Both the position numbers and the translations under genes were made by a program. The notes under the pieces are model-generated. The model saw only the letters and a list, made by a program, of their open reading frames with translations. It searched no databases and had not been told where the DNA came from. This document shows positions 22,075 to 50,806 of a stretch of 64,000 nt of DNA, piece after piece (position 1 is the stretch's first letter; each line of letters begins with the position of its first letter). Source of the DNA: Salpingoeca rosetta (taxonomy: Eukaryota > Protista > Choanoflagellata); the NCBI GenBank assembly GCA_033442325.1, contig JAWQFM010000005.1, positions 1,147,214-1,211,213 of the forward strand, read 5' to 3'.

Positions 22075-25000
22075 TCATGCGTGAATCGCCTTGTGGTCAT
22101 CGATGATGGCTGTCACCGCCTCTGGATTTGATAACGTCGTCACGTCGCCAAGGTCATCGTACTGCGGCAATGAATATGTGGAAGGCGGCAACAGTAAGAT
22201 AGGAAGGATAACGTTGAGTCAAGGAAGCAGAAGTCACATACCCTCGACGTACACCAAGCACACGCGTCATGTGGACACGAACCAAGGACCCTGCACCATA
22301 ACGACACACACCACACACAACACGCACACACACGCACACACACACACACACACACACACACACACACACACACACATACACACATACACACACCAACGAT
22401 GGCACCTGGTTTGCGGCGATTTTGCGGAGGATGCGACGCATGATCTTGCCGGAGCGGGTCTTTGGCAGGTCTGGCGTGATCTGGATGACGTCTGGGACGG
22501 CCAGCCCGCCAATGCTGCGTCGCACCGCCGCCTTCAGCTCGTCCGCTGTCTCCGCCGTCACGCGCTCCCCGGCCTTCAGAATCACATACGCATACACGCC
22601 TACATCATGTGTGTGTGTTTGTGTGGGAGTGAGTGAGGGAGGGAGAGAGAGAGAGAGTGTGTGTGTGTGTGTGTGTGAACACGAATACACAACCACAGTC
22701 TGCAGGCAACCTGCAACGTGCCACAATCCCCCTCTCTCCCTCTCTCTCTTCACGCTCTCAGCACCAAGCGCGTGCACACAAGACCTTGGCCCTTGACGTC
22801 GTGAGGATATCCGACAACAGCGGCCTCCGCAACGCCGCCGTGCTCAAGCAGCGCGCTCTCAATCTGATGATGATGATGATGATGATGGTGGTGGTGGTGG
22901 TGGTGGTGGTGGTGGTGGTGGTGGTGGTGGTGAGAATAAGGACGAAGGAGTAACAGGAAAGGGCACAGCAACTGCACGAGCACACACACACGAACACCAC
23001 CACCACCACCACCACCACTGCCACTGCCACTGCCACTGCCACTGCCACCACCATCAAGATCATCGCAGCACCTCGGCAGTGCCCATGCGGTGGCCGGAGA
23101 CGTTGATGACATCGTCGACGCGTCCCGTGATCCACAGGTGCCCGTCCTCGTCCCGCCGCGCGCCGTCACCCGTGAAGTAGTACCCCGGATACACACCCCA
23201 GTACGTGCTCGTGTACCGCTCGTGGTCCCCGTGGATCGTGCGCGCCATCGACGGGTTGCGCTAACGGTGTGTGTGTGTGTGTGTGTGTGTGTGTGTGTGT
23301 GTGTGTGTGTGTGTGTGTGTGTGTGTGTGTGTATGTGCAGCAGTCGGGTGTCGTTGGGGGTGGTGATGATCCACACACAGCAAATATTGTTGCGTCCGAC
23401 GGTGAGGAGGGGTAGAGAGCAATCAACTGCTTGTCGGTTGAGGTGGCTGCTTGCCTATGTTTTCCGCGCCACTTCGTGGCCATCGATGTGGAGCAAGCCA
23501 AAGTTAAAAAGTGGTTAGATTGGGCCCTCCGCCGACCACCAAGCCCACAACACAATAATCNNNNNNNNNNNNNNNNNNNNNNNNNNNNNNNNNNNNNNNN
23601 NNNNNNNNNNNNNNNNNNNNNNNNNNNNNNNNNNNNNNNNNNNNNNNNNNNNNNNNNNNNCCCACACACGCACACACACACACACACACACACACACACA
23701 CACACACACACACACACACACACTCTCTCTCTCTCTCTCTCTCTCTCTCTCTCTCTCTCTCTCTCTCCCTCCCTCACACACATACACACACGCGCGCAGC
23801 ACGGCTGAACGCACGTCGTCGTTGAGGATTGCAGGCGTGATGCCGAAAAACGGCTGCATGGCTGCGCCTGGCTTGTGGTTGTTCGTCCCCACGAGCGGCG
23901 CAAGCATCGGCGCTCCCGTCTCTGAAGTACCAGCACATGCGCAGGAACCAAGGCGTAGCGTAAGGTCGTGCGAAGCAGCAGAGTGTAGTGTGTGTCTTTG
24001 TGTGTATGTGCGTGTATATGTGTGTATGTGCGTATATGTGTGTATGTGCGTGTATATGTGTGTAGGCGCGTGTATATGTGTGTGTGTGTGCGCGTGTATA
24101 TGTGTGTAAGTATGTGTGTGTGTGTGTGAGTTCGTTGCAGTGGCGTCATCCAGCAAGTGCATGTGCGGACCTGTCTGCCACCACGAGTCGATGATGTCAC
24201 AGCGACCGTCCCCAACCACGTTGTGGTACCACTTCCACGCCTCCGGATTGAGGGGCTCCCCGGCTGGGCAGTGACACAAGCGAGCGACAAGACAGGAAAA
24301 TATGTGAGGGCGTAAGCGTGGGCGTGACGAGAATGTTGACATGCCGCATGAAAACATGGGTGGGGTGGGCGAGGTGCGAACGTTTAAGGATGCGATCATT
24401 GTCACAGATGTGGTGGTATTGCTCGCACCTGATCCGAGGACGCGGAGGCTGGAGCGGTCGTACTTGGTCACAAACTCGTCAGCTGTTTGCGGTGACGGCG
24501 GTGGTGGTTGGATGATGGTTATGGTGGCGGTGGTGGTTGGATGATGGTGGTGAAGGGTCATGTATGGCGAGGTCATCATGGCGAAAGTGGGATCTGATGA
24601 GGTCAAGGGCGATCAAGACACACAGTTGCGTGCATTCAATTTATGCAACAATATGTTGCAACGAACAACGCAGAACAGAAGCAGTCTTACCGTCTTTCAT
24701 CAGCCGTCGGATGGCGGTTGGTGTTGTAAAGAACTGGTTGATGCCATACCTCTCCACCATCTAAACACCGCCATCACACCACACACAAAAACACACATAC
24801 ACACAAAAATTAAACTCACATACACGTGAACAGCGTCAGAGAACGAAAGCAAGCGAGTGTGCATGACATCTGCGTTTGTCGCATGAACGCCTCGACATGC
24901 GTTGACAACTTCCACCACGAAACATCATGCATTTCACGTCATGTCACACCACACCGCCACGCGCACCTCCCAGTAGCGGCCGCTGTCGGGGTAGGTGGGG

Positions 25001-48800: not shown

Positions 48801-50806
48801 CCGTTGTGCTTGTGATCAGTCGGCGAGCCACTGAACCCCGAGGCGTATCGCTGGTTCCATGAAGTGGTCGGCAACGGAAAGTGTTCCATCGTCGATACGT
48901 GGTGGCAGACAGGTGCGTGAATGCATGCAAACCCACGCACTACTTTATGTGCGCGCACGCGCGCGTGAGTGGCTCCTGAATTGCATTCACGGCTGCATCC
49001 TTCTCATCACCTCACCATACGCACGGCTTCATTCCTGTTCATGCAGAGACGGGTGGTGCCATGATTTCACCGCTGCCTGGTATGAAGAACTGCAAGGCGG
49101 GATCAGCAATGCAGCCGTTCCTTGGCGTTGTGCCTGTCATCCTCGACAATGACGTACGCTTCACTGATTCGCCGCCTACGGCATATGGTTGTTGTGCCAC
49201 GCTTCTAGCAACATGGGCATGTTCCGATCATGCTGCACCCCATCAACCGTGTGTCCTGCTTAACGCTCACGTGCTTTCTTCCACACGCTCGTCCTTGCGT
49301 TCATCCATGTACTGTGTGACTGTTTCTTTACAGGGAAACGAGCTGCAGGGCAACAACGTGGAAGGCGTTCTGGCCATGAAGCATGTACGTGCGCGAACAC
49401 ATGATTCACCTGCCCACAAGCTCGATAGCGCGTGTGTCGTGCCTTCACATTGCGTCGTGCCTTGCTTAGCCGTATGTGTTCATGCCCATGAATTCCCTAC
49501 CCTTCAACTGCGCATTCTCCAATATGGGGACTTATTGTCACAGCCCACGCCTGGCATGGCGCGCACGATCCACGGGGACCACGAGCGGTACACGAGCACG
49601 TACTGGGGCGTGTATCCGGGGTACTACTTCACGGGTGACGGCGCGCGGCGGGACGAGGACGGGCACCTGTGGATCACGGGACGCGTCGACGATGTCATCA
49701 ACGTCTCCGGCCACCGCATGGGCACTGCCGAGGTGCTGCGATGATCTTGATGGTGGTGGTGGTGGCAGTGGCAGTGGCAGTGGTGGTGGTGGTGGTGGTG
49801 GTGTTCGTGTGTGTGTGCTCGTGCAGTTGCTGCGCCCTCTCCTGTTATTCCTTCGTCCTTGTTCTCACCACCACCCCCCCTCCCACCACCACCACCATCA
49901 TCATCATCATCATGTCCACCACCGCCACCACCACCATCATCACCAGATTGAGAGCGCGCTGCTTGAGCACGGCGGCGTTGCGGAGGCCGCTGTTGTCGGA
50001 TATCCTCACGACGTCAAGGGCCAAGGTCTTGTGTGCACGCGCTTGGTGCTGAGAGCGTGAAGAGAGAGAGGGAGAGAGGGGGATTGTGGCACGTTGCAGG
50101 TTGCCTGCAGACTGTGGTTGTGTATTCGTGTTCACACACACACACACACACACACACACACACTCTCTCTCTCTCTCTCCCTCCCTCACTCACTCCCACA
50201 CAAACACACACACATGATGTAGGCGTGTATGCGTATGTGATTCTGAAGGCCGGGGAGCGCGTGACGGCGGAGACAGCGGACGAGCTGAAGGCGGCGGTGC
50301 GACGCAGCATTGGCGGGCTGGCCGTCCCAGACGTCATCCAGATCACGCCAGACCTGCCAAAGACCCGCTCCGGCAAGATCATGCGTCGCATCCTCCGCAA
50401 AATCGCCGCAAACCAGGTGCCATCGTTGGTGTGTGTGTATGTGTGTATGTGTGTGTGTTGTGCGTGTGTGTGTGTGTGTGTGTGCGTGTGTGTGTGTGTG
50501 TGTGTGTGTGGTGTCGTGATGGTGCAGGGTCGTTGGTTCATGTCCACATGACGCGTGCCCTTGATGTGCGTTGAGGGTATGTGACTCCTGCTTGACTTTG
50601 CGTGAAATTGTTTCCTGCCTCGCTGTTCATTATCTTTACGCTCACCGTGCATGTGTCTCCGCGCATGTTTCCCGGATCCTGCCACGTCTGGTCATTATAC
50701 CTTCCAGACGGATGACCTTGGTGATGTGACAACGTTGTCCGACCCCGAGATTGTGCAGCATATCATTGAGAGGCACCAGGCCTTGCTGGAGCGCGACGTC
50801 GACTGA
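45859..50806 (+). CDS. AMP-forming acetyl-CoA synthetase, copy B, with mitochondrial-type presequence; interrupted by an N-gap
   Basis: Motifs [52 protein letters not shown] and [12 protein letters not shown]. Last exon [32 protein letters not shown]. Confidence 0.93.
45893..50597 (+). repeat. Right arm of a discontinuous inverted repeat (ACS copy B)
   Basis: Near-identical to the reverse complement of the tracts in 22217-27719. Differences are scattered substitutions and microsatellite lengths. Confidence 0.92.
46653..46933. other. Assembly gap (281 N) in ACS copy B
   Basis: N run. Confidence 1.

Follow-up and report, generated by a model that had tools for sequence, protein, structure and literature searches.

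A head-to-head pair of predicted acetyl-CoA synthetase genes in Salpingoeca rosetta: alternating near-identity and deep divergence, probably caused by interlocus gene conversion between old duplicates

How can two genes be nearly identical, introns included, along part of their length and diverged to saturation along the rest? The question is raised by a 64,000-nt stretch of the genome of the choanoflagellate Salpingoeca rosetta (GenBank assembly GCA_033442325.1, contig JAWQFM010000005.1, positions 1,147,214 to 1,211,213 of the forward strand), below called the window and numbered from its first letter. It carries two acetyl-CoA synthetase (ACS) genes, copy A and copy B, which the original prediction, made from the letters alone, had described as acyl-CoA synthetase paralogues with patchwork identity. 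The family assignment stood and is refined here to acetyl-CoA synthetase specifically. Our answer, to which we give a probability of about 0.85, is that the copies arose by an old inverted duplication and have been homogenised time and again through interlocus gene conversion.

As predicted, the copies are inverted and point apart. They form a divergent, head-to-head pair with 17 exons in each gene and an 18-kb spacer between them, and a tblastn search of the window with E. coli Acs as query gives these two ACS loci only. The basis for both is tblastn, exon models and Pfam:

Copy A, acetyl-CoA synthetase coding sequence: 27762-22075 (-), start codon 27762-27760, stop codon 22077-22075
Copy B, acetyl-CoA synthetase coding sequence: 45859-50806 (+)

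The exon models were built by hand from the E. coli Acs matches and then checked by script for splice sites and frame. All visible exon boundaries in both copies are of the GT-AG type, the phases are conserved, and the visible exons are in frame. Exon lengths are equal in A and B except for exon 1 (502 and 466 nt) and exon 17 (87 and 99 nt).

Exon 1: A 27762-27261 (-), B 45859-46324 (+)
Exon 2: in the assembled letters of neither copy
Exon 3: A 26820-26749 (-), B in a gap
Exon 4: A 26487-26208 (-), B in a gap
Exon 5: A 25943-25888 (-), B 47177-47232 (+)
Exon 6: A 25587-25501 (-), B 47493-47579 (+)
Exon 7: A 25335-25209 (-), B 47765-47891 (+)
Exon 8: A 25055-24967 (-), B 48017-48105 (+)
Exon 9: A 24760-24691 (-), B 48275-48344 (+)
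Exon 10: A 24482-24429 (-), B 48577-48630 (+)
Exon 11: A 24263-24171 (-), B 48820-48912 (+)
Exon 12: A 23921-23815 (-), B 49047-49153 (+)
Exon 13: A not in the assembly, B 49334-49384 (+), 51 nt
Exon 14: A 23260-23072 (-), B 49544-49732 (+)
Exon 15: A 22863-22785 (-), B 49947-50025 (+)
Exon 16: A 22599-22406 (-), B 50223-50416 (+)
Exon 17: A 22161-22075 (-), 28 codons, B 50708-50806 (+), 32 codons

Inverted-repeat comparison and blastn yielded four colinear inverted matches: A 27719-27058 / B 45893-46529 (93.7%, the differences being mostly microsatellite-length indels), A 26188-24934 / B 46934-48138 (92-97%), A 24537-24424 / B 48525-48635 (93%) and A 23248-22225 / B 49556-50593 (93.9%). Between the matched tracts the same comparison found no alignment of A with B. 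The genes are thus divided into shared tracts and diverged islands:

Shared tract 1: A 24934-27719 (-), B 45893-48138 (+); from the 15th codon of exon 1 to the 33rd nt of intron 8, with gaps in each copy
Island 1: A 24538-24933 (-), B 48139-48524 (+); most of intron 8, exon 9, most of intron 9
Shared tract 2: A 24424-24537 (-), B 48525-48635 (+); end of intron 9, exon 10, 5 nt of intron 10
Island 2: A 23249-24423 (-), B 48636-49555 (+); intron 10, exons 11-12, exon 13, first 12 nt of exon 14
Shared tract 3: A 22225-23248 (-), B 49556-50593 (+); exon 14 without its first 12 nt, exons 15 and 16, and intron 16 for about 180 nt
Island 3: A 22075-22224 (-); end of intron 16 and exon 17, with lengths and C-termini different from those of B

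The 5' ends are diverged as well: the first 43 nt of the A coding sequence and the first 34 nt of that of B are unrelated, and so is all upstream sequence. In the tracts, exons 5-8 and 15-16 are 99-100% identical between the copies, exon 14 is 98% identical past its first 12 nt, and introns 5-7 and 14-15 show 93-100% identity over aligned bases, the gaps being microsatellite-length differences. Exon 10 is 96% identical (52/54 nt) and stands between exons with about 75%. In the islands, identity falls to 75% in exon 9 (proportion of synonymous differences, pS, 0.87), 76% in exon 11, 73% in exon 12 (synonymous divergence, dS, about 1.1 for exons 11-12) and 77% in exon 17; introns 10 and 11 are unalignable.

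Each of the following predicted details was recovered: opening codons unique to each copy (the first 11-14), one diverged exon amid unrelated introns (exon 9, with the protein motifs read there), a near-identical tract of about 110 bp over a single exon (exon 10, 111-114 nt), AGEP against VGEP among further diverged exons (11 and 12), a third tract starting in mid-exon (RNPS/MART against PTPG/MART, 12 nt into exon 14) and a diverged last exon. The near-identity of tract 1, introns included, holds in the readable part, but gaps break both copies and the one in B hides exons 2-4, so that the identity there is only partly known.

Per-exon dS and identity along the genes are strongly non-uniform. 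By the Nei-Gojobori method, dS is 1.53 and dN (nonsynonymous divergence) 0.25 over 94 codons of the islands, against dS 0.019 and dN 0.002 over 287 codons of the tracts, roughly an 80-fold contrast in dS. The islands are saturated at silent sites yet under purifying selection, with dN/dS about 0.16. The 94 differences over 1145 ungapped coding sites are clustered: the longest identical run is 396 nt, compared with at most 178 nt in 20,000 permutations (P<5e-5).

The two versions of the tracts have themselves begun to differ, at 57 substitution sites and by many indels. In tract 1 there are 9 + 16 substitutions over the alignable part, the remainder being microsatellite-length indels, and in tract 2 there are 5 mismatches in 111-114 nt. 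The SSA (Ser/Ala-coding) repeat in exon 1 (B 45955-46000, A 27657-27610) has a 36-nt length difference between the copies; differences of both kinds, in substitutions and in SSA copy number, had been foreseen. Tract 3 has one mismatch in 49556-49832, 15 in a low-complexity intron stretch, none over the 519 nt of 49944-50462 and 11 in the last 130 nt. It had been said to decay gradually, which is true of its end; the mismatch-free 49944-50462 shows that the decay is not steady. Such uneven residual divergence suggests several conversion events of differing age and end points rather than one.

The predicted history of old duplicates repeatedly homogenised by conversion is thus supported by dS of 1.5 against 0.019, by the near-identical introns and by the uneven divergence of the tracts. 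Conservation is excluded as the cause of tract identity, since introns were overwritten as fully as exons. A boundary 12 nt inside exon 14 and a tract of only about 111-114 nt are both typical of conversion tracts.

The following scenario would account for these observations. An ancient head-to-head inverted duplication would have produced two genes for AMP-forming acetyl-CoA synthetases with a long N-terminal extension. Break repair in one copy would then have been templated repeatedly by the other copy 18 kb off, and this non-reciprocal interlocus conversion would have overwritten exons and introns in three tracts of about 2.8, 0.11 and 1.0 kb. Four stretches would have escaped and would keep the original deep divergence: the promoter together with the opening 11-14 codons, exon 9, exons 11-13 plus four codons of exon 14, and exon 17. 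How the breaks were repaired, how many conversion events took place and for what reason the islands persist are inferences.

That reason may be related to what the islands encode. By domain and motif content, both copies are predicted to be AMP-forming acetyl-CoA synthetases. When exon pieces are scanned singly, the Pfam domains follow each other along the gene in the order ACAS_N, AMP-binding, AMP-binding_C, with PF16177 in exon 1 of both copies (E about 2.5e-10), PF00501 in exon 4 of A (E 4.7e-14) and PF13193 in exon 16 of B (E 5e-12). Alignment of the spliced translations to E. coli Acs shows the core ANL motifs YTSGSTGxPKG and YxTGD...GRxDD and the catalytic-Lys motif in both. Identity to E. 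coli Acs is 43-68% per exon, and 64-68% to acetate--CoA ligases of 648-650 aa. The N-terminus of each protein is extended by about 90-100 residues, with Ala, Arg, Ser and Thr prominent, and a low-complexity stretch of Ser, Ala and His comes next; the extension appears to resemble an organellar presequence.

In E. coli numbering, island 1 covers about 346-368, island 2 about 386-473, and island 3 is the C-terminal tail from about 627. Island 2 starts at the VGEP loop, where A reads GS-A-GEP. In fungal Acs1 structures the alkyl group lies under a Trp cap, with the WIT motif and the VGEP-loop Val around it (PMC8383264); it is chiefly this Trp that determines chain length (PMC10455477). Both copies keep the pocket Trp (WWQTETG) and WIT, which lie in or adjoin shared sequence. 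The pocket Val of VGEP is Val in B and Ala in A; Val is found in 116 of 118 full-length homologues and Ala in 0/118. B therefore matches the acetate-pocket features throughout, and A departs at one pocket residue. At columns at least 90% conserved, the replacements in A are Y>F, A>T, T>S, G>A, P>V and S>A, and those in B are T>L, W>Y, Y>F, P>A and F>L; all of them are within islands.

It is plausible that selection maintains the islands as two cassettes of the pocket and adenylate site, one with Ala (A) and the other with Val (B). A neutral barrier, sequence too diverged to be convertible any longer, explains the persistence equally well. In its full form, the neutral view keeps the same history of old duplicates and conversion, and holds that the islands diverged past the identity needed for heteroduplex formation and persist with no functional selection; we consider its chances to be a little below even. 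Island introns are unalignable and island exons about 75% identical, far under the usual tolerance of recombination. The dN/dS of 0.16 means constraint, not positive selection. In relative-rate tests A has more unique changes against each outgroup, as faster evolution of A would predict, but the excess is significant only with Capsaspora and not with the other four of the five outgroups. On the other hand, the short tract 2 shows that conversion was still able to enter the diverged region, the acyl/adenylate pocket loop falls in the islands, and there A has Ala for a Val kept in 116/118 homologues and replaced by Ala in none, and several replacements in both copies fall at columns at least 90% conserved. 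A more specific proposal is that the islands form a selected, co-adapted specificity cassette, B being the canonical acetate enzyme and A, with its Ala and its other replacements at conserved columns, perhaps acting on another short-chain acid (e.g. propionate) or with other kinetics; we regard this proposal as tentative and rather unlikely.

In a different history, the whole gene was duplicated in inverted orientation only recently, and a third, distant ACS paralogue then served as donor for blocks in one of the copies, so that the islands would be imports. This too would yield near-identical tracts beside deeply diverged blocks, and RNA contigs that follow B from 46024 on with upstream sequence absent from the window (see below) are a possible hint of another locus. 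However, at least four separate imports would be needed, including the promoter with the 5' end and the 3' end, all into the same copy. Besides, derived residues at columns at least 90% conserved are present in both copies; the window has two ACS loci only, and no third variant was seen in the contigs compared, for which copy B's stretch alone was the target. In island columns A and B are 63% identical at the protein level, each being 55-60% identical to the best outgroups, and are mutually closest. A FastTree phylogeny of 120 sequences over 120 island columns joins them as sisters with support 0.93, on long branches (A 0.46, B 0.22), the ACS of Capsaspora being the next neighbour; in tract columns zero-length branches lead from A and B to their common node. 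The import history thus seems improbable, and old duplication with conversion remains our reading.

The mosaic was also compared with sequence assembled independently. At least part of B 47800-50800 is present in 20 public runs from 8 studies, and at least half of its sampled words in 16 of the 20. Logan contigs of four runs, each from a different study, were compared with 45700-50900: the DNA runs X2 (2018 study) and X6 (2014 study) and the RNA-like runs X17 and X18. DNA contigs of both X2 and X6 match 45700-45922, 48581-49585 and 50520-50804 without a difference, and 48581-49585, which includes all of the B block of island 2, is a single 1005-nt contig in each; another X2 contig covers 48109-48508. 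Five of the six tract/island junctions of B are spanned by DNA contigs, among them 45892/45893 (X2, X6) and 48138/48139 (X2). These contigs extend about 30 nt into shared sequence, as expected of graph branching at k=31. The sixth junction, 48524/48525, lies in a low-complexity stretch and is covered solely by an RNA joint of exon 9 to exon 10.

Copy A is seen in the same data. An X2 contig on 47915-48138 has a 14-nt insertion identical to A 25186-25173 and A's C at 48010, and then continues into sequence unlike B; this is A's own junction. Only three variant letters were reported (47329, 48010, 49609), each of them the letter of A at that place. Apparent joints in DNA contigs at 47154-48211 and neighbouring positions were taken for repeat artefacts, the sequence there being GT-rich and of low complexity.

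In X17 and X18, GT..AG joints were found for B introns 5 and 7-13 at the predicted coordinates, and spliced contigs run through exon 8, B exon 9, exon 10, B exons 11, 12 and 13, and exon 14. Spliced contigs of a second type fit up to 48630, the end of exon 10, and restart exactly at 49556, the start of tract 3, as expected for the A mRNA. An X18 contig has A's unique 5' coding sequence, identical to 27749-27720, ahead of 45893. Since these contigs join the shared exons to islands of both the A and B types, both genes are transcribed and spliced, and the mosaic is real for both. In practice, the two genes will be confounded wherever short reads are mapped, or expression is counted, over the shared exons.

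The notion that only one locus has the tracts, and that read collapse, gap filling or scaffolding at N gaps copied them into the other, draws on the gaps inside or beside tract 1 in both copies (the second tract 1 match of B starts exactly at the contig edge 46934) and on the crowding of the region with (GT)n microsatellites, but it is most improbable, as the switch points 48138, 48525, 48635, 49556 and 50593 are within contigs and away from gaps, the tract versions differ at 57 substitution sites and by many indels, independent runs contain both contigs with A's letters and 14-nt insertion and contigs that cross B junctions, spliced RNA contigs link shared exons to both island types, and the island exons, intact and under purifying selection, each need a complete gene around them. 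The independent DNA and RNA contigs carrying both versions thus make mis-assembly or read collapse, which the original prediction had itself named as a ground for refutation, very unlikely.

Several points weigh against old duplication with conversion. Short-read de Bruijn contigs cannot phase variants more than 31 identical bases apart, and therefore it is the original assembly that places the islands together on one molecule. In one RNA contig A's unique 5' end is followed by an SSA-repeat region that is B-like and of B length; this could be a chimeric path, a strain difference, repeat-length polymorphism or ongoing exchange. Parts of tract 1 are unread in both copies. The G+C content of third codon positions is 0.79 in tracts and 0.71-0.75 in islands, which is no clear signature of GC-biased conversion; the difference being too small, we dropped it as an argument. 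Finally, an exhaustive search with exon 4 of A, word-index searches (one of them with the Capsaspora ACS) and a profile search built on full-length homologues and exon pieces of the window found no close orthologue, none from a choanoflagellate and none closer than about 68%, nor any gene model of the window's own genes.

The searches gave mainly bacterial-type Acs proteins and scattered eukaryotic ACSs at 52-68% identity, the exon 4 search mostly fragments. The nearest full-length relatives (64-68%) are acetate--CoA ligases of 648-650 aa, mostly metagenomic, the named ones being from Planctomycetota and Kiritimatiellota/Pontiellaceae. The eukaryotic ACSs retrieved are no closer than the bacterial-type relatives (52-66%). 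A bacterial origin of this ACS lineage could explain this, and so could a sampling bias of the searches.

RNA-like contigs of two runs match B from 46024 on only, and are preceded there by 255 unlike letters. Positions 46015-46023 read TTGTTGCAG, a good 3' splice acceptor within exon 1, and A has an equivalent. Two 30-mers from the sequence upstream of 46024 in these contigs were not found anywhere in the 64-kb window. The unlike letters may come from a third locus, from chimeric contigs, or from an alternative 5' exon that lies in a gap or beyond the window; an alternative 5' exon would mean an isoform without the N-terminal extension.

The window has four runs of N (23561-23660, 26954-27053, 30229-30328 and 46653-46933):

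23561-23660: gap in island 2 of A, flanked by (GA)n(GT)n, the expected site of exon 13
26954-27053: gap in the intron 1/2 region of A, hiding exon 2, whose size of 86 nt comes from RNA (see below)
30229-30328: gap in the spacer, between microsatellites
46653-46933: gap in B, hiding exons 2, 3 and 4

Exon 2 of A is placed in its gap because the phase is 1 at the end of exon 1 but 0 at the start of exon 3, and about 29 codons (Acs residues about 86-107) are absent. The gap 23561-23660 probably hides exon 13 of A, which has 51 nt in B. The gap in B must be longer than the 281 N written, as tblastn gives no B match to Acs residues about 86-224 and exons 2-4 have to fit inside. The first record among the spliced X17 contigs fills this hole: it starts 21 nt 5' of the ATG of B, has 437 letters between 46324 and 47176, and proceeds through exons 5-7. 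Counting the shared G at 47176, the insert between exons 1 and 5 is 438 nt, that is, exon 3 (72) and exon 4 (280), with lengths read in A, plus an exon 2 whose 86-nt size is derived from this RNA contig. The frame is kept at exon 5 (466 + 438 + 56 = 960 nt), and the B coding sequence has 2199 nt, or 732 codons and a stop. The reading frame of B is thus completed through the RNA contig; that of A is intact where readable, exons 2 and 13 being unread. Since exons lie in gaps, gene models for both loci in this assembly are necessarily incomplete. A degenerate tandem copy of exon 3 in A (26821-26888, minus strand) stands directly upstream of exon 3 and provides its CAG acceptor; lying 65 nt from the gap 26954-27053, it may be genuine or may be an assembly flaw.

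The window as a whole has 56% G+C and is rich in (GT)n microsatellites and short GT-AG introns. The spacer is not empty:

27763-45858: spacer between the divergent start codons, 18.1 kb, unique sequence containing other genes
36759-37886 (-): open reading frame in the spacer encoding a C3HC4 RING finger (Pfam E 8e-12)

Because the copies are inverted relative to each other, a crossover between them would not delete the 18-kb spacer but turn it round, and with it at least the RING-finger gene.

The process itself is already known, islands of divergence within converting paralogues have been described previously, and this locus is a new example. Interlocus conversion between duplicates with islands of divergence is familiar from the human RHD/RHCE and primate opsin genes, and arm-to-arm conversion from the palindromes of sex chromosomes. 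In the GOT1 paralogues of the copepod Tigriopus californicus, interlocus conversion likewise homogenised exons and introns over most of the length, and the islands that persist, short and strongly diverged, are candidates for functionally distinct regions (PMC3728101). Unlike GOT1, the ACS pair is head-to-head with an 18-kb spacer, in the genome of a unicellular choanoflagellate, and dS ranges from 0.02 to saturation; a substrate-pocket residue already known in this central metabolic enzyme falls in the main island, and the pair is known here from the sequence of one genome. Palindromic segmental duplications, exemplified by the mouse chromosome 12 palindrome with its arm-to-arm conversion (PMC13688818), are similar in that inverted repeats around a unique spacer are held near-identical by intrachromosomal conversion and crossovers invert the spacer. 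In contrast, the ACS arms are one gene long (about 5-5.7 kb), old islands interrupt them and the flanks are excluded, so this is no large structural palindrome. Compared with characterised acetyl-CoA synthetases such as E. coli Acs, both copies have the same domain order and motifs, including WIT and the pocket Trp; the N-terminal extension of both copies and the Ala for the VGEP Val in A are differences. A literature search found nothing on this ACS locus.

The pair is an unusually sharp natural case of conversion opposed by divergence, with an approximately 80-fold contrast in dS within one gene. The position of each tract boundary is fixed to some tens of bases, and one boundary is in mid-exon. 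One residue in the main unconverted block shapes the acetate pocket, as crystal structures have shown. If the islands are indeed specificity cassettes, conversion would keep the remainder of both genes identical, and crossovers in the tracts could invert the spacer, swapping promoters between the enzyme variants. Should A and B prove to use different substrates, the locus would be an example of a duplicate specialising in one small module while the remainder stays tied to its partner.

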